Part shown: positions 15,356 through 52,520 of the stretch, one piece after another
Layout of the letters: each line of letters begins with the position of its first letter
Numbering within the stretch: position 1 is the first letter of the stretch
DNA from: Salpingoeca rosetta
Taxonomy: Eukaryota; Protista; Choanoflagellata
Assembly (NCBI GenBank): GCA_033442325.1
Contig: JAWQFM010000020.1
Location: 481,719-545,718, forward strand
Length of the DNA: 64,000 bases
Reading direction: 5' to 3'
The notes under the pieces: generated by a model
Databases searched by the model: none
Seen by the model: only the letters and a program-made list of their open reading frames with translations
Told to the model about the DNA's origin: nothing
Made by a program: the position numbers and the translations under genes

Positions 15356-16753
15356 TCAAAACAGTGGCGACGGGTGCTGGTCGATGGTGCCGATTGGGTG
15401 GAGGGTGTGGAGGTACTGCCGCACGTGGTCCAGCAGTGCTTGCCGCTCCTTCAACAGCCGCTGTCGCTTCTGCACAAGCAGGTCCTTGGTCTTGTTCAGC
15501 AGCGTCAGGCGCTGGCGCACCGTCCGGCGGCCGGTGAGCTCTTGGTTGCGGCGGCGCCAGTAGCTGCGGCGTGCAATCTCTCGCGTGCGCTCAAGCTTCT
15601 CGTGGTCAATCTCGCCGTTCTCAAGCACACACCGCTTGTTGATGGCGCTGCGCCCGCGCATCATCGTGCTTGCTGTGCCCTTGGCGCGCACGCTGCTGTT
15701 GTTGCCGCGTCTGCGCTGTGCCCGCTTGCTCTTGCGACGGTGTGCTGGCGATGACGTTGACGATGGCAACGAGGAGGAGGACGAAGAAGAGGAGCTTGTG
15801 GCTGTGTGCGATGTGGGCTGCCAAGGGGTGAGATCTTCAGCGTCGCTGCTGTTGGATGAGAACGACGCAGCAGACAGTGCTGACGCCGACGATGCCGCAG
15901 ACGCCTGTCGCTCTTCCATAGACGAGGAGGAGGTGGAGGAGAAGGAGGAGAGGAAGGACTCCAGGGCTGCGTCAAAAAGGTTCATGTCTGCATGGCTCAG
16001 CAGCTTCTCGACCTTGATGTCGCTATTCAATGTGAACGCAGGCAGGAGGGCACCGTCATTGCCCTGGCTCTGCGAGGCGTTGGCGCCGCCGACGTTGATG
16101 GCACCGCCATCTGCCGTCGCTGTTGCTGCTGTTGTTGTGGGGAAAACATCATCATCAAAGTGGAAGATGTTGTCGCTTGTGCTTTCGAAGCGGAGGCGGG
16201 GGCTTGCCAGCCCAGTGTCAAAGTCGAAGAACGGTGCTGCCTGCTGGTGGACTTGGTGCTGCTGCTGCTGCTGCTGCTGCTGCTGGTGGTGGTGGTGGGA
16301 AGCAGCAATGCTGTTGGAGGACTTGGATGCGTGGAATAAAGACACCGATGATGATGAGGATGATGGCGGGGATGATGGTGTCATCGACGTGTCCTTCTTG
16401 GTGTCGTCGATGATGCCAAAGCCGCTGTCCAAGGCTGCCATCATGGTGGAATTGGTGTTGAGCGTGGAGAAGGCGGATGTTGTTGGTGTGGGGGATGTTG
16501 CGGATTTGCTTGCCGTTGCATGCAGGCAAAGGGATGGGGAGTGCTGTGCATACAGCTGCGAGTAGTCGCTGCTGCCGCTGCTGCCGCTGCACATGCTTGG
16601 CGTCAAAGGAACGGCGCTGAGGTCGAGGTCTGCTGCGGAGCGGCTTGTGCGGCAGCAGGTGGGCTTGGTAAGGGTGCCTGCTTGCTGGACGAGGCCATCC
16701 AGGTATGTGTGGTAGGTGGCGACGCCCTCCCATGTTGGTGTTGGGGTGTCCAT
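15356..16753 (-). CDS. Non-canonical bZIP-like transcription factor, copy 1 (465 aa, intronless)
   Basis: Start context gcaccATGg. S/Q-rich and acidic-hydrophobic N-terminus, NLS-like HRRKSKRAQRRR, basic region EKLERTREIARRSYWRRR, then a heptad V/L-x6-L-x6-L-x6-L-x6-L. Confidence 0.75.
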   Translation of the reverse strand: MDTPTPTWEGVATYHTYLDGLVQQAGTLTKPTCCRTSRSAADLDLSAVPLTPSMCSGSSGSSDYSQLYAQHSPSLCLHATASKSATSPTPTTSAFSTLNTNSTMMAALDSGFGIIDDTKKDTSMTPSSPPSSSSSSVSLFHASKSSNSIAASHHHHQQQQQQQQQHQVHQQAAPFFDFDTGLASPRLRFESTSDNIFHFDDDVFPTTTAATATADGGAINVGGANASQSQGNDGALLPAFTLNSDIKVEKLLSHADMNLFDAALESFLSSFSSTSSSSMEERQASAASSASALSAASFSSNSSDAEDLTPWQPTSHTATSSSSSSSSSLPSSTSSPAHRRKSKRAQRRRGNNSSVRAKGTASTMMRGRSAINKRCVLENGEIDHEKLERTREIARRSYWRRRNQELTGRRTVRQRLTLLNKTKDLLVQKRQRLLKERQALLDHVRQYLHTLHPIGTIDQHPSPLF

Positions 16754-16929
16754 GGTGCTGCTGGTACAGCGGTTGTTTGTTTGTCCGTTTGTGGACTAAG
16801 GAATGCGCGAGGCGCGTTCTTCCGGGTTGTTCGCCACTCCTCGTGCTCTCGGTGTGGTCCTGGGTCGGTGCCGGTGTGGTGAGTGGGTTGGACGGCTTTC
16901 ACAGCTTGGCGTCTCCTCCGTCTCTGGAC

Positions 16930-17046
16930 CTATGCTCTTGAGAATGCGATGACGACGGGTAGTGCGTGCGGCAGAGCAGCAAGTGGCACGCACTTGAGCA
17001 CTTTGAGGTTGAGGGACTGGAGAAAATGGCTCGTGTCGAGCACCAT
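16930..17046 (-). CDS. Upstream ORF (38 aa) in the leader of bZIP-like copy 1
   Basis: ATG 17046 to TAG 16930: MVLDTSHFLQSLNLKVLKCVPLAALPHALPVVIAFSRA; homologous uORF at 52669-52806. Confidence 0.55.
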   Translation of the reverse strand: MVLDTSHFLQSLNLKVLKCVPLAALPHALPVVIAFSRA

Positions 17047-50067: not shown

Positions 50068-51212
50068 CAACTGCACGTGTGGCGTGTGTGTGTGTGTGTG
50101 TGTGTTGCACGATTGAGACACACAGGCGCACTGCACAAGCATGCACACATGAGCGACCAACGAACACTTTGTCTTGCCTGAATGCTGCTTTGACATCACA
50201 CGTACAAGATGTAGTAAAGGTTCTGTCATTTGTGCATCAAGGTCTTGTGTACAACCGAAGGTAACACGATGGGCGTGATGAAGAAGAAGGGAAGACTGAG
50301 GCGATGGGCCACAGCGTAACAACACGCGCACGCACACACACACACACACACACACACACACACACACACACACACACACACACACACACACACACACACA
50401 CACACACACACACACACACACAGAGTCTCTGTCTCTCAAACTCGATGACGGACCCGCCACACCACGCACCCACTCAAGCACTCATAAAGATACTCATTTA
50501 CAAATGGTGCCTTACAAGAGCGCAATTTGACATGCTCTGCAGGGATGGATAGCGCCATTGCAGACGCTTTGGCTCTTGGAATGACCAACCAAACAACATA
50601 GATTGGCACCTGGTCACACTGAGCGTGTCGATGCTTGCGCGCAAGACCTCACAAAATCACACATCGGCACCTTCATGCACACACACTGTAAGTGTCTTCT
50701 GTCCAAACCTTCGTCATCTTGAACTCTTGACTCGCTTCGTTCCCACGCATGCTTGTCACCATTGTGAACTTCCGTGATGATGGTGATGTATTTTTTCCCC
50801 TTTTCTTGTCGAGGAAAGAACGCGTTGAACATCTAAACTTTGTTCGTGAATCGCCACATCGAGCGGCCAACAGAATGGACAAAACAGTCAACGACAGCAG
50901 GTGTACCACATGACGATGACACGTGAAGGGAGTTGAATGGTAGAACAGATACAGGCACAAGCAGTGTCCTGAGGGGTGGGCGTATACAAAACATAAACAT
51001 GCCAACGTTCATCCAAGACACACAAGTACAGAAAGCAGAAGAAAACAGAAGATCAAGAAGAAGTTGATGACATGACAATCATGACGATAGGGGTTAATCA
51101 TTACAGCACCCAAGCGCAGGCTTCATCAGCACAAGAATAACAGCAGCCATTCGTGTCATTCATTCAGCAACAAGTGTCTTAGGTGAGGGAACAGCTCCAC
51201 AGCACAGGCAAT

Positions 51213-52520
51213 TCAGAACGGGGACAGCGAATATTCGCCGTTGGGATCCATGGGGAGGACGGTGGGGAGGTTCTGTCGCACGTGGTCCAGCAGTGCCTGC
51301 CGTTCGTTCAACAGCTGCTGTCGCTTTTGCACAAGCACCTCCTTGGACTTGTTCAGCAGCGTCAGGCGCTGGCGCACGCCTTGCCGGCTCTTCAATTCGC
51401 GCTTGCGACGGCGCCAGTAGCTGCGGCGCGCAATCTCTCGCGTGCGCCCCAGCTTCTCATGGTCGATCTCGCCGTTCTCAAGCACACACCGCTTGTTGAT
51501 GGCACTGCGCCCGCGCATCATCGTGCTTGCTGTGCCCTTGGCACGCACGCTGCTGCTGCTGTTGATATTGCCCTTGTTGCTGCGATTGTACTGTGCCCGC
51601 TTGCTCTTGCGACGATGCGCTGGTGATGAGGACGATAAGGAGGTGGAGGAGGTGGAGGAAGAGCTTGCATGCGGCATGAGCTGCCGAGTGATGGGCTCCT
51701 CACAGTCGCTGTCGTCGGACGACAAGGACATAGCAGACAATGTTGATGCCGATGACGCCACAGACGGCTGCCGCTGTGGTTGTGGCAATGAGGAGGAGGA
51801 AAAGGAGGAGAGGAAGGATTCCACGGCTGCGTCAAGCACCTGGTCTGCATCTGCATGTGTATGGCTCAGCAGCTCCGCAACGCTGGCGCTGACACCTGCT
51901 TCAAACCCGGGCAGGAAGTCTGCATCAACACCGCGGACATGGTTGCCCTGGTTCTGCGAGGGGTTGGCGGCGCTGACACTGATGGCATCGTTGTGTGCCG
52001 CCGTTGTGGGGAAGGCATCGTCAAAGTGGAAAATGCTGTCGGTTGTGCTTTTAAGGCGGAGGTGGGGTGCAGCCGGTGCGCTATCGGTGTTGATGCCAAA
52101 GGCGCTGTTCAGGGCTGCCGTGTTCTTGAGTGTGGAAAAGGCGGGTGCTGTTGGCAGCAATGGCGAGGCTGGCTCGGTTGCATGCAGGCAAAGGGACGGG
52201 GAATGCTCTGCGTACAGCTGCGAGTAGTCGCTGCTGCTGCTGCTTTGCTTCTGTTGGTTGCCCATGTTTGGCGGGGAGGCTGCAAAGCGCGGTGAGAATA
52301 CATGGTCGCTGCTGCCGCTGCACATGTTGTTACCGCTGCACATGCTTGGCATGAAGGGGATAGTGCTGAGGTCGAGGTCTGCGGGGCGGCTTGTGCGGCT
52401 CGCACGGTGGACGGTGTGGTGGACGGTGGGCTTGGTGAGGGTGCGGGTTTGGTGGACAAGGCCATCTAGGTATGCGTGGTAGGTCGGGATGCCCCCCGAT
52501 GCTGGTGTTGGAATGTCCAT
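51213..52520 (-). CDS. Non-canonical bZIP-like factor, copy 3 (435 aa, intronless)
   Basis: ATG at 52520 (gcaccATGg, MDIPTP) is homologous to the copy 1 start. Shares SDYSQLYAxHSPSLCLHAT, IFHFDD and KRCVLENGEIDHEKLxRTREIARRSYWRRR plus the zipper. Confidence 0.75.
   Translation of the reverse strand: MDIPTPASGGIPTYHAYLDGLVHQTRTLTKPTVHHTVHRASRTSRPADLDLSTIPFMPSMCSGNNMCSGSSDHVFSPRFAASPPNMGNQQKQSSSSSDYSQLYAEHSPSLCLHATEPASPLLPTAPAFSTLKNTAALNSAFGINTDSAPAAPHLRLKSTTDSIFHFDDAFPTTAAHNDAISVSAANPSQNQGNHVRGVDADFLPGFEAGVSASVAELLSHTHADADQVLDAAVESFLSSFSSSSLPQPQRQPSVASSASTLSAMSLSSDDSDCEEPITRQLMPHASSSSTSSTSLSSSSPAHRRKSKRAQYNRSNKGNINSSSSVRAKGTASTMMRGRSAINKRCVLENGEIDHEKLGRTREIARRSYWRRRKRELKSRQGVRQRLTLLNKSKEVLVQKRQQLLNERQALLDHVRQNLPTVLPMDPNGEYSLSPF

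Follow-up and report, generated by a model that had tools for sequence, protein, structure and literature searches.

Proteins of the basic leucine zipper (bZIP) type are formally recognised by their score against standard profiles and by the hallmark N-x7-R/K, an asparagine and an arginine or lysine separated by seven residues of the basic region. Departures from the hallmark asparagine have been described: the "novel class" bZIPs of oomycetes (C-R, R-R and V-R; Phytophthora sojae), which are duplicated and expressed, have it replaced (PMC4046829), and the N182T form of Zta binds DNA with similar specificity and 3.3-fold more weakly (PMC8756438). Here we describe a gene family of the choanoflagellate Salpingoeca rosetta, three copies of which (c1, c2 and c3) lie in a 64-kb window, the whole stretch of DNA that we analysed (contig JAWQFM010000020.1, positions 481,719 to 545,718; 55% G+C, four N runs). 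The family fails both formal bZIP tests and yet has the bZIP architecture. It is a real, constrained and lineage-restricted bZIP-like family, and its proteins probably act as transcription factors of a type not recognised before.

A six-frame search of the window for the shared C-terminal block gave three matches, all on the minus strand, in agreement with a preliminary description of this DNA that had noted a near-invariant C-terminus common to the three copies. The family had there been called triplicated, which is correct for the window and too low for the genome, where we count five copies. The two further ones, PTSG_07716 (454 amino acids) and PTSG_12624 (463 amino acids), were found by a word-index protein search that also returned c1 and c3, and a literature search on these two genes found no paper about them. 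All five copies are located on supercontig GL832974.1 (1,277,873 bp), of whose record the window is the reverse complement (window position w corresponds to record position 796156 minus w). Exact look-up gave record positions of 743.6, 769.6 and 779.4 kb for c3, c2 and c1, respectively; PTSG_07716 and PTSG_12624 are inverted and are found near 1051 and 1061 kb. The c1 protein has an exact match on record, a single-exon gene at GL832974.1 779403-780800, and the first ATG of c3 lies at 52520 within an open reading frame (ORF) spanning 51213-52799. The paralogues had been described as intronless, and this holds for c1 and c3, each a single exon, and not for c2, which is incomplete: its ORF (24896-26386) has no ATG and comes to 496 amino acids as listed from a TTG, and the annotated model of 457 amino acids starts at 26604 and joins an unrelated upstream exon to it across an intron.

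The low ratio of nonsynonymous to synonymous divergence (dN/dS) and the near-synonymous changes in the core point to purifying selection on the C-terminal block. In the 35-codon core (RSAINKRC...SYWRRR), the numbers of synonymous and nonsynonymous codon differences are 3 and 0 between c1 and c2, 6 and 1 between c1 and c3, and 7 and 1 between c2 and c3, and they include the GAC/GAT, GGC/GGT, ATT/ATC and AGC/AGT pairs from which mostly synonymous change had been read earlier. Nei–Gojobori dN/dS was 0.17-0.27, not near 1, in the 92-codon C-terminal block in comparison with 0.5-0.9 in the remainder, a contrast that is still clear with the pairwise distances blurred by gene conversion. The same constraint is seen across species. 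Of the c1 core residues, 32 of 35 are identical in a member from a transcript-like contig (P0005) and 28 of 35 in Barroeca (P0006), and the core is nearly invariant among the five paralogues and in the four members found elsewhere. An alignment of eight members leaves R13, C20, G25, R36, I38, A39, R40, S42, Y43, W44, R46, R47, L64, L71, L78, R82 and L85 invariant (domain numbering), while outside the domain the proteins can hardly be aligned between species, apart from an N-terminal and an acidic-aromatic motif.

We searched the domain profile exhaustively against 1.84 billion representative proteins (E ≤ 0.001). The search returned eight cluster representatives, two of them from S. rosetta, four family members from elsewhere (P0005-P0008) and two taken as noise (P0009 and P0010, bacterial-type coiled-coil proteins matching in the zipper only). 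No metazoan, fungal or other relatives were found among the 1.84 billion. The family is so far known only from choanoflagellates, and the earlier label "lineage-specific" is borne out by these eight representatives, whose only named species are S. rosetta, Barroeca monosierra and Hartaetosiga gracilis.

Near-identity of the C-termini could also be a by-product of recent duplication and gene conversion among copies that are decaying or non-functional, and the locus has indeed had such a history. The segment containing c1 and c2 has its counterpart (L001/L002) at GL832974.1 1040917-1072000; identity between the two is mostly 89-98%, reaching 94-98% in the intergenic part and falling lower inside the genes and at the segment end. 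Homology ends at window position 26127, equal to codon ~99 of PTSG_12624 and thus within its coding region, which places the edge of the duplication inside the gene and leaves c2 without the first ~100 codons. Consistently, tblastn found c2 homologous to the other copies only from codon ~92 on (window 26119 downward), with microsatellites and unrelated sequence above 26119. The c2 5' flank has nothing in common with the flanks of c1 and c3 and this, together with the missing start, marks c2 as a truncated derivative. The 5' flanks of c1 and c3 (16754-18400 versus 52521-53900), in contrast, are ~67% identical over the first ~550 bp and have further short matches (at best 97% over 31 bp) as far out as ~1.6 kb, at an inter-gene dS of ~0.5; this conserved flank may represent a shared 5' UTR (untranslated region) or promoter. 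Sliding-window identity among the four young copies (c1, c2, PTSG_07716 and PTSG_12624) is a mosaic, c1 being 100% identical to PTSG_12624 where it is only 69-73% identical to its positional counterpart PTSG_07716, and we attribute this to gene conversion between clusters 270 kb apart. The oldest paralogue is c3, with dS of about 0.45-0.52 to the other copies. The history is thus one of an old c3, a younger tandem pair and then an 11.7-kb inverted duplication that truncated c2 at one edge, followed by gene conversion among the four young copies. The mosaic, the truncated c2 and a c1-c3 dS of 0.30 in the block, below the 0.51 of the remainder, are what a mere by-product would give. However, Barroeca, Hartaetosiga and the two other sources retain the block with the rest of the protein unalignable, the core changes are almost all synonymous, all ORFs are intact, and c3 is transcribed. 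We took the conservation across species as deciding the question of constraint; it largely refutes the by-product explanation, which is very improbable for the family and would apply to c2 at most.

AlphaFold2, run with the family alignment, predicted for the monomer one continuous helix of 68 residues at domain positions 29-96 (predicted local distance difference test, pLDDT, 94-98), and the same long helix appears at residues 384-451 of a full-length c1 model. A short helix and a tight turn come before it, both predicted within the invariant upstream extension. The basic half carries the arginine-rich stripe R-T-R-x-I-A-R-R/K-S-Y-W-R/K-R-R, and the zipper that follows has V/I/L57, L64, L71, L78 and L85 at its heptad positions (V412, L419, L426, L433 and L440 at the "d" positions of c1), the last four being invariant in the eight members and corresponding to the four leucines at 7-residue spacing picked out at first sight. 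Two features expected of a bZIP protein, an uninterrupted helix through basic region and zipper and at least four heptad-spaced leucines directly after the basic region, are therefore present, the former in the predicted monomer. Most of the full-length c1 model is disordered (336 of 465 residues at pLDDT < 50), the non-helix bulk of the proteins being rich in serine, threonine and glutamine; other helices in it are two short amphipathic ones at residues 14-29 and 257-270. The N-termini had been said to diverge, and this is true of the middle region and not of residues ~13-29, which are conserved in c1, c3 and other species: the motif Y-x2-YLD-x-L-[IV]-x-QA is kept in c1, c3, P0002, P0003, P0005 and P0006, and is internal in P0008. 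A second motif, the acidic-aromatic F-x-F-D (FxFDD-type), is also kept across species, with F197 and F199 of c1 invariant. As modelled, the overall layout is that of an activator with a C-terminal basic-zipper domain.

Read coverage was examined over 50100-55100, around c3, to which reads can be assigned uniquely. Contigs from run X5 cover the c3 footprint and nothing in its flanks within this interval; the run is identified as RNA because it carries a spliced junction at 55036 that is also seen in three raw RNA runs. In the raw RNA-seq data of 2026 (X18-X20), c3 is covered to a depth of at most 2.6, with first mates on the plus strand, and the reads of its upstream neighbour are mainly in the orientation opposite to c3. 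From the span of the contigs and the orientation of the reads, we conclude that minus-strand transcription of c3 yields an unspliced mRNA of ~1.9 kb. Absence of expression had been named as an outcome that would refute the first reading, and the RNA contigs and strand-consistent raw reads show expression directly for c3 only; that of c1 is only indirectly indicated, by word shares (0.18-0.30) in four runs, made from three samples, of the 2011 study.

How the basic half compares with that of canonical bZIPs depends on the register chosen. A hidden Markov model (HMM) alignment to CREB (a segment identical to 5zko_A residues 4-54) pairs T with the hallmark N, I-A with A-A and S with C. In this signature register, threonine (alanine in P0008) stands at the hallmark Asn and an invariant tyrosine at the hallmark Arg, the T-x7-Y pattern of the preliminary description, and 2+2 extra residues, Y-W among them, are inserted before the zipper. 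The alignment thereby reproduces the shift of about four residues described before and puts the heptad leucines at canonical "a" positions. A second register, in phase with the zipper, is given by HMMER for bZIP_1 and ATF-4 and puts the invariant R47 at the hallmark Arg and the invariant A39 at the Asn position; the R47-x9-V57 spacing is canonical here, at the cost of the signature similarity, whereas it is not canonical in the signature register. In both registers T35, I38, A39, S42, Y43, R46 and R47 form one helical stripe with the spacing i, i+3, i+4, i+7, i+8. The DNA-facing stripe of bZIP basic regions follows the same spacing, and on the predicted helix the invariant stripe resembles a groove-facing surface.

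With a probability that we put at roughly 0.55, the family members are nuclear transcription regulators that pair by the zipper and bind DNA via the altered basic helix. A number of observations weigh against this reading, beginning with the low depth of the raw reads on c3 and the indirect signal for c1. As had been anticipated for standard bZIP profiles, a Pfam scan of c1, c2 and c3 found no family at E ≤ 1, and in a domain-only scan the P0008 domain alone matched bZIP_1 (15.2 bits against a cut-off of 27.6, E = 0.023); no member tested reached the gathering threshold for PF00170, PF07716 or PF03131. Searching the PDB by sequence and with three profiles gave no significant match: the top nonsignificant rows belong to M protein, designed coiled coils and a segment of a polyketide synthase, and the sub-threshold rows for the family profiles include ATF-4 (E = 0.14-0.92), CREB (0.39-1.2), Fos (1.4) and BACH1 (0.41). 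Foldseek returned nothing from the PDB for the single-helix model, and hhalign of the family profile to CREB gave a probability of 4.8% and aligned only the zipper. By language-model features, two divergent members come closest to bZIP_1, bZIP_2, bZIP_Maf and CREBL2-type clusters, at similarities of 0.89-0.90 that serve as a lead only; like the bZIP_1 match of P0008, the bZIP rows from the PDB and the CREB alignment, this is a weak but recurring signal in favour of bZIPs. In short, none of the Pfam, PDB-profile and hhalign comparisons lends statistical support to bZIP homology. The N-x7-R/K pattern is absent, both hallmark residues being missing in the signature register with the zipper four residues out of phase, and insertion studies on GCN4 are said to have shown that non-heptad insertions abolish canonical binding. 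The zipper core is also unusual. With the leucines taken as "d", the "a" positions of c1 read L, K, R, R and V, just as first noted, and those of the family L, K/T/H, R/K/F, an invariant R and V/L; judged by sequence, the three central ones are ill suited to the core of a parallel homodimer. Hydrophobic residues at several "e" positions would allow an antiparallel pairing or a different oligomeric state, and the designed coiled coils among the top nonsignificant PDB rows are antiparallel. Given the basic or polar "a" and the hydrophobic "e" positions, a simple parallel homodimer is not assured.

The same missing hallmarks and the lack of a significant bZIP match would also be expected if the proteins did not bind DNA and the arginine-rich Y-W helix were instead an RNA-binding motif or a docking site for a partner such as calmodulin, with the coiled coil serving only to oligomerise. 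The hydrophobic residues W44, L51 and V57 fit the 1-8-14 spacing of calmodulin targets, and the arginine- and tryptophan-rich composition resembles that of arginine-rich RNA-binding peptides. We consider this unlikely, as a disordered, activation-like N-terminal part followed by a basic helix that runs on into the zipper is the arrangement of a bZIP-type factor, every weak database signal that carries a family name leads to bZIPs, and no RNA-binding or calmodulin-target family was matched. More generally, the Pfam and PDB comparisons gave no non-bZIP family shared by the members, and in this respect, too, the first assignment has not been displaced by a better match. Weak Pfam matches to PEHE (0.052) and CREPT (0.094) are not family-wide and were taken as coiled-coil or charge noise, and a match of P0006 residues 383-455 to the C-terminal tail of the CBF_beta profile (E = 0.001, 19.2 bits against 25), seen in P0006 alone, is probably noise as well. 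A zinc site in the upstream extension was rejected: the extension has a single invariant Cys, and its His is V or N in two members.

If the proteins do act as DNA-binding regulators, the zipper would join two chains, a protein with itself, with one of its near-identical paralogues or with another partner, and the paired chains would, like those of bZIP proteins, bring their two basic helices to the DNA major groove. With T or A standing for the hallmark Asn and Y for the hallmark Arg, the recognition code would be changed, and the four extra residues between stripe and zipper would re-phase the basic helices and probably alter the sequence or the spacing of the half-sites. The short conserved amphipathic and acidic-aromatic motifs could act as activation or cofactor-binding motifs. 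On the strength of these sequence features, each protein is probably a dimeric DNA-binding activator. A pure inhibitor appears less likely because both the N-terminal amphipathic helix and the acidic/aromatic FxFDD-type motif look like conserved activation-domain motifs.

The zipper core bears also on another possibility, that the family provides dominant-negative or obligate heterodimer partners of canonical S. rosetta bZIPs, as CHOP or Fos-type proteins do, and that the altered basic region fails to bind DNA or redirects the heterodimer. The basic and polar residues (K, R and the invariant R) at the central "a" positions, which disfavour homodimers, and the loss of the hallmark Asn and Arg are in line with such a role. 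On the other hand, no part of the protein is conserved more strictly across species than the basic stripe, which is unexpected for a DNA-binding surface that had merely been inactivated; the conserved activation-like motifs fit an active factor; and five near-identical zippers could equally pair among themselves. We regard a partner of this kind as improbable. Within the preferred reading of DNA-binding regulators, a more specific version is held only tentatively, at clearly less than even odds: that the proteins form a choanoflagellate-specific DNA-binding class derived from bZIPs, with both hallmarks replaced, four residues inserted including the invariant Y-W, a new half-site and an upstream extension making accessory contacts. 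In such a class, the basic helices would contact DNA at a changed phase, their half-site sequence or spacing would be one not read by any canonical bZIP, and the invariant extension RSAINKRCV..G..DH would be an accessory DNA-contact motif like the extensions of CNC or Maf proteins.

Table 1. Features of the family and its locus (positions in the window; residues are those of the protein named)
Feature	Position	Strand	Description or basis
Copy 1 (c1, P0001)	15356-16753	-	Complete single-exon coding sequence from ATG, 465 amino acids; ORF and translation
Copy 2 (c2)	24896-26119	-	5'-truncated paralogue; tblastn limits, gene model, upstream sequence and flank comparison
Copy 3 (c3, P0004)	51213-52520	-	Complete single-exon coding sequence, 435 amino acids from ATG
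c1 core block	15548-15652	-	RSAINKRC...IARRSYWRRR, residues 368-402
c2 core block	25088-25192	-	Codon comparison
c3 core block	51405-51509	-	Single change, E to G; codon comparison
c1 single long helix	15401-15604	-	Predicted, residues 384-451: basic half, then five heptads; AlphaFold2
c1 N-terminal amphipathic helix	16667-16714	-	Predicted, Y..YLDGLVQQAG, residues 14-29; helix pLDDT about 60-66
c1 acidic/aromatic motif	16139-16174	-	DNIFHFDDDVFP, residues 194-205; cross-species conservation
c3 transcript footprint	50771-52705	-	RNA-derived contigs, run X5 (2011), 0 differences, no joints
Segment with c1 and c2	14449-26127	.	11.7-kb segmental duplicate of the inverted PTSG_12624/PTSG_07716 segment ~270 kb away
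c2-only repeat expansion	25232-25349	-	12-bp repeat, 9.8 copies, encodes (NSST)n just upstream of the domain
Assembly gap, intergenic	19977-20076	.	Spanned by 79 bp of the paralogous segment
Assembly gap, intergenic	21633-22102	.	Spanned by 372 bp of the paralogous segment
Assembly gap, intergenic	23945-24044	.	~850 bp downstream of the c2 stop; paralogous segment also gapped
P0005			Family member, transcript-like Logan contig of SRR24908159
P0006			Family member, Barroeca monosierra
P0007			Family member, metagenome assembly
P0008			Divergent family member, Hartaetosiga gracilis

Three of the N runs lie between c1 and c2, outside every ORF, and their flanks match in order and orientation those of the paralogous segment, which is collinear with window 26127 down to 14449. 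Its continuous sequence across the first two gaps supports the way their flanks are ordered and oriented, and as it has no family member at the gaps, they hide no further copy. The third gap falls at the same relative place in both duplicates (window 23945-24044, L001 2636-2735), which suggests a repeat that is hard to assemble. The c2-specific (NSST)n takes the place of a basic RRKSKRAQRRR stretch present in c1, c3 and PTSG_12624, and PTSG_07716 has a short form of the c2-type linker.

Upstream of c3 and divergent from it, a transcribed plus-strand unit extends over 54609-55100 and beyond, at a depth of 10-20 in three RNA runs, and has a splice donor at 55036; the annotated model of 111 amino acids at 54515-54850 is probably incomplete. 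Similar small divergent models are found upstream of c1 (17552-18807, 161 amino acids) and of PTSG_07716. On the other side, a WD40-repeat gene (44301-50067, plus strand, a model of 1639 amino acids) is convergent with c3, and an ORF at 44109-46139, upstream in the region of this gene, has a weak F-box-like match (E = 0.002).

No living organisms are more closely related to animals than the choanoflagellates, and reconstructions of the pre-animal regulatory toolkit draw on inventories of choanoflagellate transcription factors that have been built with Pfam-type profiles (e.g., PMC4736632); such profiles miss the present family entirely. If the domain binds DNA, it would add an uncounted, lineage-specific class of factors to S. 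rosetta and provide a natural experiment in which a basic zipper has departed from N-x7-R/K and from the fixed spacing with its function retained. The locus is also a clear case of recent segmental duplication and gene conversion, and these bear on read mapping and on the design of knock-outs in S. rosetta, a model organism, where the five copies are probably redundant.

Among known systems, the bZIP superfamily (PF00170, PF07716) shares with the family a C-terminal basic region and heptad zipper in one long helix. The family's T-R-E-I-A-R-R-S-Y locally resembles the bZIP signature N-R-E-A-A-R-x-[CS]-R, and the periodic stripe and the disordered, activator-like remainder are equally bZIP-like. 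Unlike bZIPs, the family has T (A in Hartaetosiga) for the Asn, Y for the Arg/Lys, four extra residues before the zipper, basic central "a" positions and the invariant upstream extension, and no member reaches a Pfam threshold. The nearest named language-model neighbours of c1 and P0008 are CREBL2-type bZIP_2 clusters, at 0.89 and thus below the 0.9 line for even a lead, and the exhaustive profile search gave no sequence-level match to them. CREBL2 also carries a small hydroxyl residue at the hallmark Asn. The partner-requiring bZIPs of the Fos/CHOP type resemble the family in their polar or charged "a" residues, suggestive of weak homodimerisation, whereas Fos keeps a canonical basic region. 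The oomycete novel-class bZIPs are, like the family, lineage-restricted and expanded by duplication and keep a predicted helical basic zipper (PMC4046829). They retain the Arg/Lys of N-x7-R/K and are detected by iterated bZIP HMMs (PMC4046829), whereas in the choanoflagellate family the Arg position and the spacing have changed as well.

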